A stretch of DNA of 6,398 nucleotides from Vitrella brassicaformis CCMP3155 (lineage: Eukaryota > Protista > Chromerida). The position numbers were made by a program, and so were the translations under genes. The stretch covers positions 1 to 6,398 of the forward strand of contig CDMY01001006.1 of NCBI GenBank assembly GCA_001179505.1, read 5' to 3'. The notes under the pieces are model-generated. The model did no database searches. It was not told where the DNA came from and saw only the letters and a program-made list of their open reading frames with translations. Within the stretch, counting starts at the first letter, position 1. Each line of letters opens with the position of its first letter. Below, one piece after another: positions 3,394-6,398 of this stretch.

Positions 3394-4270
3394 TCAGCGA
3401 CAAAGCCGAACAGACCAAAACTCTCTGTCGGTGCATTTCTTTTCAGCATCTGCCACAGCACATGGAGTCAGAAAGATAAACAGCAGGGCCGATGAGGTCT
3501 CCCAACGGCGGACCTTCACAGGACACACTATAGACCTGCACTCGAGTACCCACACAATCAATGAGCGAGGCAGCCACACGATGCCGTGGTCCCATTCCCT
3601 CCCTCTCTGTGTGTCCATACTCACGTGGTATCCGCCGCGGCATCCTTGGTAGTCGGCGTCTGCATGTGGGCCGCCAATGCAGTTCTCGTCAACGTCGCCG
3701 AGGTCGCACGTGACTACACAGCTCTGGAGCTCCCGCAGCTGCGGCTCTCCATCAGCCACGGCAGCAGCAGCAGGGTGGCCCTCCTGCCCATCGCTGCTGT
3801 CGGCAGCATTCACCTCCTCAAGACGGTGTCGTCGCGCAACGCACTCCGCAGAGCAATCGCTGATGCACGAGTCGATGCACTCGCCCCCCAGGCCCGACTC
3901 AGAGCAGAAACCGCCACAGAAGGCGCCTGCAGCCAAGTGCGAACACATGTGAAGTCATACAACCGATGAGTGGATGATGATCTCGAGCATTGACCATACC
4001 GCACAGATCGATGCATAGGGCCTCCGGGTCGACCTGAAGGCGCCGCGCCACAGCGCCGCCTGCCGCCACTGACGAGTCCTCTCTCTCTTGAACACCTGCA
4101 GCCACGGGCCATGAGTGGATGATCGTACCACCATGGGATCTCTGTCTGTTCGTGTGTGTGTCTGTGTGTGAGTATGTGTGTGTGTACCTCTGATGGCGGA
4201 TTTAGGTAGCTGTTGATGCGACGGCGAGGGTCAGCAGCATCAGGGCAACCGTCGAAGAGCAAGAGGCCAT
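3394..4270 (-). CDS. Secreted cysteine-rich precursor (about 185 aa if repaired); exons 4270-4188, 4095-4000, 3926-3625, 3535-3514, 3449-3394; 1-nt frameshift in exon 1 as given (pseudogene or sequence error)
   Basis: ATG 4270 in gcaATGg context gives signal peptide MASCSSTVALMLLTLAVAS. Introns are 4187-4096 (GTACAC..CTGCAG), 3999-3927 (GTATGG..CTGCAG), 3624-3536 (GTGAGT..GTGCAG) and 3513-3450 (GTCCGC..TGGCAG, weakest). Phases 1,1,0,1 all join and rebuild a regular Cys pattern across an exon boundary (LCIDLC|GAFCGGFC). The signal-peptide frame hits TAA at 4204-4202, while the frame needed for splicing (QLPKSAIRG) is offset by 1 nt. Confidence 0.72.
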
Positions 4271-4460: not shown

Positions 4461-4626
4461 TTCGCATTGGAAAAATCCCTTTCTCCGCCCTTGCGAGCTC
4501 AGAGAGGTCAATCTGCATCGTGGCGCTAGCTGTGTTTCCAATTGTGTGTTGTCGATGGGCAGCAATGACGGCTGGCGGAGCTGAGATGGCCTCTGGGTGC
4601 AGGTTACCTCTCTCTCCTGACGCTTG

Positions 4627-4832
4627 GCTGACGAAAAGAGGTACGAGAGGACACTGGCGTGACACTGTGTGTGATGTATTTCTGTGTGTGCCTGTGGCAG
4701 ATCTGAGGCCTTCTTGCTTCTGACGCTGCTGAGTGAGGGAGGGCGAGAGAAGTCTGTCACAGCCAGCTGACTTACTGACATCCCCAGGAGCCGACTGAGG
4801 TGCGGTACACGAAAGAAAGCCACTCGGATGTT
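4627..4832 (+). repeat. 206-nt block A, near-identical to 5532-5737
   Basis: Base-by-base comparison at offset 905 found one mismatch (4659 G vs 5564 A). Confidence 0.93.
4641..4799 (+). other. Probable spliced 5' UTR of copy 2 (introns 4641-4700 and 4733-4787; exons 4701-4732 and 4788-4799), duplicated at +905 for copy 3
   Basis: Sites read GAG|GTACGA...CTGTGGCAG|, then GA|GTGAGG...CTGACTTACTGACATCCCCAG| with branch-point-like CTGAC motifs, then 12 nt GAGCCGACTGAG and donor GTGCGG at the position of the copy 1 micro-exon donor. The spliced exons give stops in all three frames, so they are non-coding. Confidence 0.45.
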
Positions 4833-4942
4833 GTCAGAGCGATGGCTCATGGCCCGATGCCGTCGGTAAGCATAAACTTGGGGCGCCACACATTCACTCA
4901 CTCATCTGACGTCTGTGTTCTGCCTGTGTGGGTGCGCAGATC

Positions 4943-5536
4943 ATGTCGGGTGCTGCGGCGGCTGATGGAGCTGGTGGCTCTGCTAACGAGCCATCCTCGT
5001 CCGCTGCGTCGGCCGCCGATGGTAACCAACACTTTCGCTGCCCAGAAGGACAACCCTGCAGAAGCACATGTGCGTGGCGTGTTTCAGGTGCCGGCAATGC
5101 ACCTTCTGCCCACCACCAGCAGCAGCATGATCACCTTATCAGTGCCGCTGATGTGCCTGAGGAGGCAATGGCAACAGTTGCCGAGTACGTCAGGAGCTAC
5201 TCACAGCTGGAGGCCCTCATCGACGCCCATCCCACCCAATTCACCGCCGCCGTCCTGCTGCCCATCCTCACACGACTGCTGCCCGTCGAGCTCAGAGAGG
5301 GGAATCTCGCATCTTCGGAGTCGCAGTGGCTTTGTGTGTGTCTTGGGCTGCTGCATTCGACTCGGGAAGGTTGCCTCATGCCGCGGCTTGGCTGCATTCG
5401 ACTCGTCATGTCTGTGGCGCTATGCTGTGTTTCCCCATGGGTGTTTCCATGTGTTGTCGATGGGCAGCACCGACAGCTGGCGGCGCTGAGAGGGCCTCTG
5501 GGTGCAGGTCACCTCTCTCTCTTGACGCTTCGCTGA
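4943..5536 (+). pseudogene. Family copy 2, 3'-truncated; homology ends at about 5286 and the frame reads on into duplicated upstream DNA to a stop at 5536
   Basis: Acceptor GCGCAG at 4939, then ATC ATG 4943 gives MSGAAAADGAGGSANEPSSSAASAAD. Intron 5022-5087 leads to GAGNAPSAHHQQQH...SYSQLEALIDAHPTQFTAAVLLPILTRLLP. From 5287 the DNA (CGAGCTCAGAGAGG) matches 4494 onward instead of the family CDS. Confidence 0.75.
5350..5405. repeat. 15-nt direct repeat GCTGCATTCGACTCG (5350-5364, 5391-5405) within the extra segment of duplication unit 2
   Basis: Exact match; lies in about 110 nt present in unit 2 but not unit 1 (offset changes from 793 to 905). Confidence 0.8.
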
Positions 5537-5737
5537 CGAAAAGAGGTACGAGAGGACACTGGCATGACACTGTGTGTGATGTATTTCTGTGTGTGCCTGT
5601 GGCAGATCTGAGGCCTTCTTGCTTCTGACGCTGCTGAGTGAGGGAGGGCGAGAGAAGTCTGTCACAGCCAGCTGACTTACTGACATCCCCAGGAGCCGAC
5701 TGAGGTGCGGTACACGAAAGAAAGCCACTCGGATGTT
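5532..5737 (+). repeat. 206-nt block B, near-identical to 4627-4832
   Basis: 205/206 identity by manual comparison; identity stops abruptly after GGATGTT. Confidence 0.93.
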
Positions 5738-5812
5738 CACAGGTCGATGAGGCGCCACCAATGGATTCATTGATGTGACGTCTGTCTTATGCTGTTTGTG
5801 AGTGGGCAGATC

Positions 5813-6398
5813 ATGTCGGCTGCGGCTGATGGGGCTGGTGGAACTACCGACGAGCCGTCCTCGTCGGCTGCTGCGTCGGCAGCTGCCAATGGTACCAAAG
5901 ACTTTTGCTGCGCAGAAGCACAACCATCCAGAAGCACATGTGCCGGGAATGCACCTTCTGCCCACCACCACCAGCAGCATGAGGGCCCCATCAGTGCCGC
6001 TCATGTGCCGCAAGATCTGGCCCCGACGGTTGCCGAGTACGTCAGGAGTTACTCACAGCTGGAGGCCCTCATCGACGCCCATCCCACCCAATTCACCGCC
6101 GCCGTCCTCCTGCCCATTCTCACCCGGCTGCTGTCCGCCGTGGTGGCCGCCATCTTTGGCGCTTTCGTGGAGGTGCCGATGCCTCAGCTGACCCAAGGTG
6201 CGGCCATCATTGTGGTCATCACACGTCGGCTCTTCATCCTCGAGAGGGGCGGCGATTGGGCCAGATGGCGGCCGCACTTGGAGATGCTGTACTTGCTGAG
6301 GGGAAGGAGTCCTTTGGTGCTGAGTGGCGACGACTTCGGTGTGTTCGCCACTCGCGCGGCCTTTGTGAGTGAGACGGAGGCCGTCCGGCAGTGGAAGA
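5813..6398 (+). CDS. Family copy 3, partial (open to window end)
   Basis: Acceptor GGGCAG at 5809 and ATG 5813. The frame is open to 6397: MSAAADGAGGTTDEPSSSAAASAAANGTKDFCCAEAQPSRSTCAGNAPSAHHHQQHEGPISAAHVPQDLAPTVAEYVRSYSQLEALIDAHPTQFTAAVLLPILTRLLSAVVAAIFGAFVEVPMPQLTQGAAIIVVITRRLFILERGGDWARWRPHLEMLYLLRGRSPLVLSGDDFGVFATRAAFVSETEAVRQWK. It is collinear with copy 1 apart from indels and is absent from the ORF track because no stop falls in the window. Confidence 0.8.
   Translation, partial: MSAAADGAGGTTDEPSSSAAASAAANGTKDFCCAEAQPSRSTCAGNAPSAHHHQQHEGPISAAHVPQDLAPTVAEYVRSYSQLEALIDAHPTQFTAAVLLPILTRLLSAVVAAIFGAFVEVPMPQLTQGAAIIVVITRRLFILERGGDWARWRPHLEMLYLLRGRSPLVLSGDDFGVFATRAAFVSETEAVRQWK

Follow-up and report, generated by a model that had tools for sequence, protein, structure and literature searches.

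A transcribed, spliced and frame-broken gene copy, probably a young pseudogene, in a Vitrella-restricted family of modular secretory cysteine-rich proteins

Alpha-hairpinins are helix-loop-helix peptides of the pattern C1X3C2XnC3X3C4, in which four cysteines (Cys; rarely five or six) are joined by C1-C4 and C2-C3 disulfides (PMC11591084). Cleavage after the Leu of an RxL motif by plasmepsin V, or of an RRL motif by ASP5, is established in Apicomplexa (PMC4764566), and in the diatom silaffins, cingulins and silicanin-1 an 'RXL domain' following the signal peptide is removed by an unidentified protease (PMC5525289). We examined a Cys-rich gene of Vitrella brassicaformis CCMP3155, a free-living photosynthetic relative of Apicomplexa whose assembly, searched here for paralogues, comprises 72,700,666 bp in 1064 scaffolds (PMC4501334). 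The window, that is, the whole stretch of DNA analysed, is the entire scaffold C1006 (6,398 bp), and the gene lies on its minus strand from 4270 to 3443 in four exons. The gene is real and transcribed, and its introns 1 and 2 are spliced. We consider it, on balance, to be a copy that is transcribed and correctly spliced but broken in frame, from a Vitrella-restricted family of modular secretory Cys-rich proteins, and probably a young pseudogene.

Sequencing runs X1, X3, X4 and X5 were examined as Logan assembled contigs, in which rare variants are dropped. A 240-nt contig of X5 aligns to 4295-4188, 4095-3999 and 3925-3891 contiguously, with zero mismatches or gaps; because it joins the borders of introns 1 and 2 directly (4188 to 4095 for the first, a skip of 73 nt for the second), both introns are removed as the preliminary description of this DNA had proposed, and the region of intron 3 lies outside X5 coverage. 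In the same contig exon 1 extends 5' of the ATG, to 4295 or further, and the 3' untranslated region reaches at least 3239, with 3431-3239 covered by an X5 contig. The parts of the gene are as follows.

4188-4270, minus strand: coding part of exon 1 (leader), with the ATG at 4270-4268 and a signal-peptide-like stretch followed by a frame break; matched by the X5 contig without mismatch
4096-4187, minus strand: intron 1, 92 nt, GT..AG, phase 1, at the same position in paralogues
4000-4095, minus strand: exon 2, with an acidic pro-piece, RRLQ (4045-4034) and then Cys1 and Cys2 of module 1
3927-3999, minus strand: intron 2, 73 nt, GT..AG, inside module 1 between Cys2 and Cys3
3625-3926, minus strand: exon 3, with Cys3-Cys8 of module 1, RRHRLE (3834-3817), an acidic linker, RELQ (3735-3724) and the first half of module 2
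3536-3624, minus strand: intron 3, 89 nt, GTGAGT..CAG, phase 0, after GGYH; spliced in the deposited protein model
3443-3535, minus strand: coding part of exon 4, with the second half of module 2, ending SMCCGRC, and the stop codon TGA at 3445-3443

The translations of exons 2 and 3 given in the preliminary description match those derived from the DNA. Its observation that the Cys pattern of module 1 spans an intron also holds, since intron 2 splits the module, dividing the Gly codon after Cys2, and its splicing is seen in the X5 contig.

DNA and protein searches of the Vitrella genome revealed at least seven loci of the family, and thereby homologues with conserved Cys spacing and RxL sites of the kind for which the preliminary description had proposed a search. 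The window copy shares with them a homologous leader exon (76-78% nucleotide identity to four paralogous loci, with the same intron 1 position) followed by a phase-1 intron starting GTACACAC..., a twin CX3CX3CX3C module with a loop of 6-8 residues in the family, and the module 2 signature (RxLQ, GH, YxGC, GY, CCGxC) with a phase-0 intron after GY-x. What is missing at this locus is the unbroken frame from the leader ATG through the modules that the family otherwise calls for. The reference for the family layout is P0002, in which the leader exon with a signal peptide is followed by the phase-1 intron, a short acidic pro-piece ending in RxLQ, module 1, a basic RR(R)RL[QE] site, an acidic linker, a second RxLQ and module 2; in the family, module 2 has 8-10 Cys, is predicted to be beta-rich and terminates in CCGxC. 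The other Vitrella loci vary around this plan.

Scaffold C456 at 88 kb: P0002, 196 amino acids (aa), intact; a hand-built gene model equals the deposited protein
Scaffold C456 at 309 kb (~309.1-310.1 kb): decayed copy with modules 1 and 2 in different frames, shifts in the last exon and a 10-nt deletion that costs a Cys
Scaffold C382 at 39 kb and 40 kb: a tandem pair, of which one copy (39 kb) has a 10-nt leader deletion leading to TGA and the other (P0005) enters an assembly gap
Scaffold C456 at 304 kb: P0006, 283 aa, with a signal peptide, LRKLQ, module 2 alone, a transmembrane helix and a Pro-rich tail
Scaffold C340 at ~99.3-100.0 kb, minus strand: member with swapped order, namely leader, RELQ, module 2 (...SMCCGTC), RRRRLHQ, linker, RELQ and module 1

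The C340 member may also be broken, the second half of its module 1 lying in another frame. In the decayed copy at 309 kb on C456, which has P0006 as a neighbour 4 kb away, a 15-nt tandem repeat has expanded between the modules (SDSGG or QRLRR by frame), and a third, RQLQ-led Cys module follows CCGTC. Outside the Vitrella assembly, a metagenome contig (k147_3842651, ENA ERZ893784) is 82-93% identical to Vitrella family loci, implying that a second Vitrella-like organism is present in public data. Its member, P0003, looks intact and has modules 1 and 2 joined to a different downstream exon, which matches Vitrella scaffold C356 at ~57.4-58.1 kb. A HMMER search of 1.84 billion representative proteins with the family profile matched Vitrella or Vitrella-like proteins and gave no Chromera or apicomplexan match; the sole other match, a Spiroplasma lipoprotein, is repetitive, aligns to the low-complexity linker and was rejected as spurious. 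The leader exon used as a protein query likewise retrieved family members alone, with no sign that the leader is shared with unrelated genes. Taken together, the family is real, small and fast-evolving and, as far as the searched databases show, confined to Vitrella-like organisms.

The introns of the window copy have features of their own. The donor of intron 1 directly starts an (AC)n microsatellite (GTACACAC..., window 4139-4187) in every family member, and diverged paralogues keep it at this position, as does the second Vitrella-like organism. A 13-nt element is identical in introns 1 and 2 (4111-4123 and 3966-3978), two matches to a 14-nt pattern with at most one mismatch were obtained in 0/200 shuffles, and the 3' ends of the two introns are similar (GGCTGCAG; 4095-4109 and 3926-3940). 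The paralogues are uninterrupted at the position of intron 2. The shared element, the similar 3' ends and this lack of an intron in the paralogues suggest that intron 2 arose by copying part of intron 1.

The preliminary description had presented the gene as hidden and as made of five exons. It is in fact already deposited in shortened form, as a 138-aa protein (P0001, that is, CEM38888.1 / A0A0G4H519), which was also the sole match in a word-index protein search with exon 3. This deposited model splices intron 3, uses no fourth intron and terminates ...SMCCGRC, and an intron at the position homologous to intron 3 is also held by the P0002, P0006 and C340 genes. The alignment of module 2, the conserved intron position and the deposited model thus settle intron 3 by homology and lead us to reject intron 4. 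That proposed fourth intron (3513-3450) would have left an exon of 22 nt, whereas the read-through to ...SMCCGRC and the stop is conserved: the CCGxC C-terminus of paralogues P0002 and P0006 agrees with it, as does P0001. The proposed fifth exon (3449-3394) and the 24 C-terminal residues of the protein predicted earlier are consequently the product of a false intron.

3394-3513, minus strand: rejected intron 4 and exon 5, of which 3513-3446 belongs to the coding part of exon 4, 3445-3443 is the TGA and the rest is 3' untranslated region

A contig of run X4 runs unspliced from 3909 to 3328, through intron 3; it was not counted as evidence against this intron, since X4, with contigs of 104 kb, was probably sequenced from DNA.

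The 5' end of the deposited model requires correction, because it begins within an intron.

3946-3948, minus strand: start ATG of the deposited 138-aa model, inside intron 2, which the transcript contig lacks

It could be argued that the 138-aa protein is the real product, starting at the ATG at 3948 and having no signal peptide, as it is the database annotation and has an open frame from an ATG. However, its ATG and first 8 residues sit in an intron that is removed in the transcript contig, it would sever module 1 after Cys2 and drop the leader carried by all paralogues, and a cytosolic protein with 16 Cys is implausible; we regard this alternative as extremely improbable. The start in intron 2 is probably an annotation work-around, the annotators having been unable to join the leader exons because of the frame break. 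What is new relative to the deposited model is exons 1 and 2, which were proposed in the preliminary description and are confirmed by the transcript contig.

The frame break lies in exon 1, where the ATG frame reads MASCSSTVALMLLTLAVASTAT and then meets a stop codon at 4204-4202 after 22 codons.

4202-4204, minus strand: in-frame TAA after codon 22 of the ATG frame, identical in the DNA contigs of X1 and X3 and in the spliced contig of X5

Alignment of exon 1 with the paralogous leader exons reveals a 3-nt gap and a 4-nt surplus, that is, a net gain of 1 nt, and therefore the TAA. The AVAS-QLPK join within exon 1 that had been written into the predicted protein requires the omission of base 4213, by which the TAA is skipped. 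In the spliced X5 contig, the RNA of exon 1 is identical to the genome, TAA included, and in runs X1 and X3, which come from two studies, DNA contigs match the window over the whole stretch without any difference (the assembly may itself derive from these runs). This agreement of the spliced contig with the DNA contigs of two studies makes an assembly error unlikely. Two TGA codons occur in the frame leading into exon 2, which has no upstream ATG and in which no obvious near-cognate start was found either. Of the secreted precursor proposed earlier, the signal-peptide-like leader exon thus exists, but the protein as written is not encoded, owing to the stop after codon 22.

In the window copy, translation from the only available ATG would end after 22 codons, and the modules would most likely not be made. 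We therefore think it fairly probable that this copy makes no Cys-rich protein, a loss of function that we infer from the sequence. The break would be recent, since nothing downstream of it is damaged and transcription and splicing of the gene continue. Gene decay also recurs in the family, as in the copy on C382 at 39 kb (the 10-nt deletion leading to TGA) and the copy on C456 at 309 kb (several frame breaks). Several points weigh against the interpretation as a young pseudogene. The part downstream of the break is flawless, with 16/16 Cys, both RxLQ, all splice sites and ~170 open codons, and together with ongoing transcription and splicing this could mean that the copy is used by some unseen mechanism. 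Moreover, the transcript support is a single low-depth contig (4.7) from X5, a run of unrecorded type, which leaves 3432-3890 uncovered, intron 3 resting on the paralogues and the deposited model and not on reads.

It is conceivable, in particular, that the copy is functional and yields a full precursor by +1 recoding at ACC-TAA-A, or through a minor transcript or allele with an intact frame. The intact Cys, motifs and splice sites of a gene that is transcribed and spliced would fit such a use, shifting by +1 at the stop would make the exon-1 product 28 residues long, just as it is in P0002, and assembled contigs drop rare variants. However, there is no slippery P-site codon, and we know of no +1 recoding of this kind in chromerids. 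In addition, the sequence is the same in three independent contig sets, decay is plain in other members of the family, and the annotators failed to build a full model too. A functional copy appears improbable to us, and a transcribed, frame-broken young pseudogene is the reading that we keep for this locus.

What the intact members encode can be judged from the two modules, which are distinct, as the preliminary description had stated, and are each conserved in paralogues.

3841-4015, minus strand: module 1, twin CX3CX3CX3C with an 8-residue loop, from the Cys1 codon (4015-4013) to the Cys8 codon (3843-3841), including intron 2
3446-3720, minus strand: module 2, an 8-Cys domain from the first Cys codon (3720-3718) to the last (3448-3446), including intron 3

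Module 1 reads C-IDL-C-GAF-C-GGF-C-(8 aa)-C-IDS-C-ISD-C-SAE-C. The two CX3CX3CX3C runs separated by an 8-aa loop, first noticed in the window, are real and kept in paralogues P0002 and P0003; the decayed copy at 309 kb on C456 has CX2C at one step. In shuffle tests, CX3CX3CX3C gave P=0.003 for exon 3 alone, and two such runs in P0002 gave P=5e-5. Conservation of the spacing in paralogues and these shuffles exclude a chance origin of the Cys pattern. For P0002, modelled by AlphaFold2 with a shallow family alignment, module 1 is predicted to form a helix (24-60), a turn (61-62) and a second helix (63-88) at pLDDT 70-77. The helical hairpin suggested for this module is thus predicted at moderate confidence for P0002, but it found no significant Foldseek match. 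Overall confidence of the models is at most moderate (mean pLDDT 49 for P0002, a poor model as a whole, and 61 for module 2), which tells against leaning heavily on them. On such a helix-turn-helix two Cys stripes would face each other, and up to four disulfides could form between them; a stapled hairpin would pair them as C1-C8, C2-C7, C3-C6 and C4-C5.

Alternatively, module 1 could be a metal-binding element with thiolate-lined helices, similar to metallothioneins or copper-storage proteins, instead of a disulfide-stapled hairpin. Eight Cys in strict i+4 spacing on two predicted helices would suit such an element, whereas the secretory route favours disulfides, module 1 has no His or Met enrichment, and CX3C...CX3C in a helix-loop-helix is the classic motif of disulfide-stapled alpha-hairpinins (PMC11591084). 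We find metal binding quite improbable, and continue with the disulfide-stapled hairpin as the more suitable description of module 1.

Module 2 aligns among P0001, P0006 and P0002 with 20 invariant columns, including RxLQ, GH, YxGC, GY and the terminal CCGxC, and AlphaFold2 predicts for module 2 of the window copy a short helix and 3-4 strands, i.e., a beta-rich domain (pLDDT 61). As it also forms the ectodomain of the type I membrane protein P0006, module 2 is a domain and not necessarily a released peptide, and the earlier proposal that the precursor releases two small peptides is not supported in that form.

The borders of the modules follow a common pattern. RxLQ is located 1-6 residues ahead of the first Cys in 13 of the 14 family modules examined, among them modules 1 and 2, the differing third module in the 309-kb copy on C456 and the differing second module in the copies on C382; the exception is RCQLGS ahead of module 2 of P0003. 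When these sequences were shuffled, the result was 0/20,000 for the three P0002 sites and P=1.5e-4 for the two sites of the window exons. In P0002 and P0003 module 1 is followed by a basic RR(R)RL[QE/H] site, as module 2 is in the C340 member; after module 1, this site is RGRRLQ in the C456 copy at 309 kb and RRHRLE in the window copy. Because RxLQ marks the borders of unrelated modules and survives the swap of module order, it seems better read as a signal for boundaries or processing than as an element of a single fold.

The Vitrella genome has 17 pepsin-family matches at about a dozen loci. One aspartyl protease exon (C688:132600-133091, minus strand) matches, among solved structures, plasmepsin V only (4zl4, 6c4g and 8tyf; E 1e-22), and two other pepsin-family loci match ordinary pepsins and cathepsins. 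This indicates that an enzyme of the plasmepsin V (PMV)/ASP5 type is encoded in a free-living chromerid, and it makes processing of the precursors at RxL sites plausible. Intact members would enter the endoplasmic reticulum and then fold oxidatively. A plasmepsin-V/ASP5-type aspartyl protease would cleave after the Leu of the RxL sites, thereby taking off the pro-piece and freeing the modules from one another; the modules would act extracellularly. As for the match of the sites to the known specificities, RRLQV of the window fits RRLxx and RRLQQ of P0002 fits RxLxE/Q/D, and RELQS and HRLEE fit neither consensus fully. Two facts speak against such a protease as the processing enzyme: most family sites are RQLQ or RELQ, with P2' often not the E/Q/D that the Plasmodium enzyme prefers, and TgASP5, which is strict for RRL, did not cut the comparable RELLD (PMC4764566).

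It is also possible that the family proteins are not cut at all, and are multi-domain proteins that act extracellularly in the wall, in adhesion or in binding, with RxLQ as an N-terminal domain cap or as a mark of the end of the pro-piece only. Several features are in line with this view: module 2 with an LRKLQ flank is the ectodomain of P0006, RxLQ is invariant in the module 2 alignment as expected of a structural element, and the module order is swappable (C340) as in domain shuffling. However, RxLQ stands before two unrelated module types and a third type (C382 and the C456 copy at 309 kb), a behaviour that a fold-specific cap would not show, modules are followed by a separate basic RRRRL site, and the motif lies in low-confidence flanks of the AlphaFold2 models. 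Uncut proteins are a real if minority possibility. The combined proposal that the RxLQ sites are natural substrates of the Vitrella plasmepsin-V/ASP5-type protease, and that module 1 is an undescribed four-disulfide 'ladder' helical hairpin, is likewise tentative, and we advance it as a speculative one. If this proposal of processing is true, PEXEL/TEXEL cleavage would predate parasitism and would originally have been a general pro-protein convertase activity for modular secreted precursors.

Known families were searched for with the exon translations, deposited P0001 and P0002 as queries, in the case of Pfam also with P0003 and P0006. Pfam returned sub-threshold matches only, to TIL and a plant CR-domain; TIL (PF01826) scored 15.6 and 14.8 bits on a paralogue, against a gathering cut-off of 24.5 bits, and had no match on the window exons. 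P0002 carries the name of ShKT (PF01549) in UniRef, and this assignment was rejected as well: the Pfam ShK model matched none of P0001, P0002 and the exon translations at E up to 10, and module 2 is modelled as beta-rich. A PDB sequence profile search gave no match at E up to 10, and Foldseek gave none at E <= 0.001 with both AlphaFold2 models; the alpha-hairpinin Luffin P1 appeared at rank 13 (E 5.9), a curiosity and not evidence. A wide structure search of module 2 with VIA-align reached a best Z of 3.0, which is not significant, and the ESM Atlas held no usable match for P0002. The preliminary description recognised no named family, and we agree, as Pfam, PDB sequence, fold, HMMER and ESM Atlas searches are all blank outside Vitrella; nor did the Pfam, PDB, Foldseek and HMMER searches give a clear match to a known non-secreted protein, which it had named as a finding that would speak against it.

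Elsewhere on the scaffold, the Cys-rich gene sits among three tandem copies of an unrelated plus-strand gene (808-2316, 4850-5342 and 5810-6398), one being full-length, another truncated and the third cut off by the end of the scaffold. Repeats are present at 1118-1345, 5115-5342 and 5967-6194, and at 4545-4844 and 5450-5749, and a 300-nt block, 96% identical, lies upstream of each of the two downstream copies. This gene has a main exon of 407 aa, for which Pfam gave no match.

The locus itself is of little import, being already deposited, mis-modelled and probably a dead copy. The interest of the family lies in its predicted 8-Cys version of a disulfide-stapled helical hairpin and in the strict RxLQ grammar at module borders in a free-living photosynthetic organism, related to Apicomplexa, whose genome also has a plasmepsin-V-type protease gene, by which the role of the PEXEL/TEXEL protease before parasitism arose becomes a testable question.

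Among described systems, alpha-hairpinins such as Luffin P1 and EcAMP1 resemble module 1 in having CX3C on two antiparallel helices with a short loop, the helix-turn-helix of module 1 being predicted in P0002, and their secretory precursors can also carry several Cys modules between processing sites (PMC11591084). In contrast to their four, rarely six Cys, module 1, which contains C1X3C2-Xn-C3X3C4, has 8 Cys and thus four possible staples; moreover, there is no sequence homology, the host is a chromerid alga and not a plant, and RxLQ is not a plant-type border site. PEXEL/TEXEL substrates share R-x-L shortly after the signal peptide (the Vitrella family has internal sites in addition), and Vitrella has a plasmepsin-V-type gene. 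However, Vitrella is free-living, with no host cell for export, its sites are mostly RQLQ/RELQ with Gly or Ser at P2', and several of them occur per protein, at module borders. The RXL pro-pieces of diatoms are similar in consisting of a signal peptide and a short stretch ending in RXL on secreted or wall-associated, often Cys-rich proteins (PMC5525289). They belong to another lineage, with a silica context that is absent here, and the Vitrella motif differs in recurring with each module and being extended to RxLQ. ShKT, like module 2, is a small secreted Cys-rich domain with a C-x-x-C-type C-terminus (CCGxC in the family), but the ShK fold is helical, and module 2 has 8-10 Cys instead of 6 and is predicted to be beta-rich. 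Small Tim proteins share with module 1 a helix-loop-helix with CX3C on each helix; they are chaperones of the mitochondrial intermembrane space with two disulfides and no signal peptide, and the resemblance is analogous only, the Vitrella proteins having no Pfam match. Overall, the family would represent an 8-Cys variant of the hairpin idea without homology to the alpha-hairpinin or twin-CX3C families, in a precursor whose layout appears to resemble that of several of these systems.

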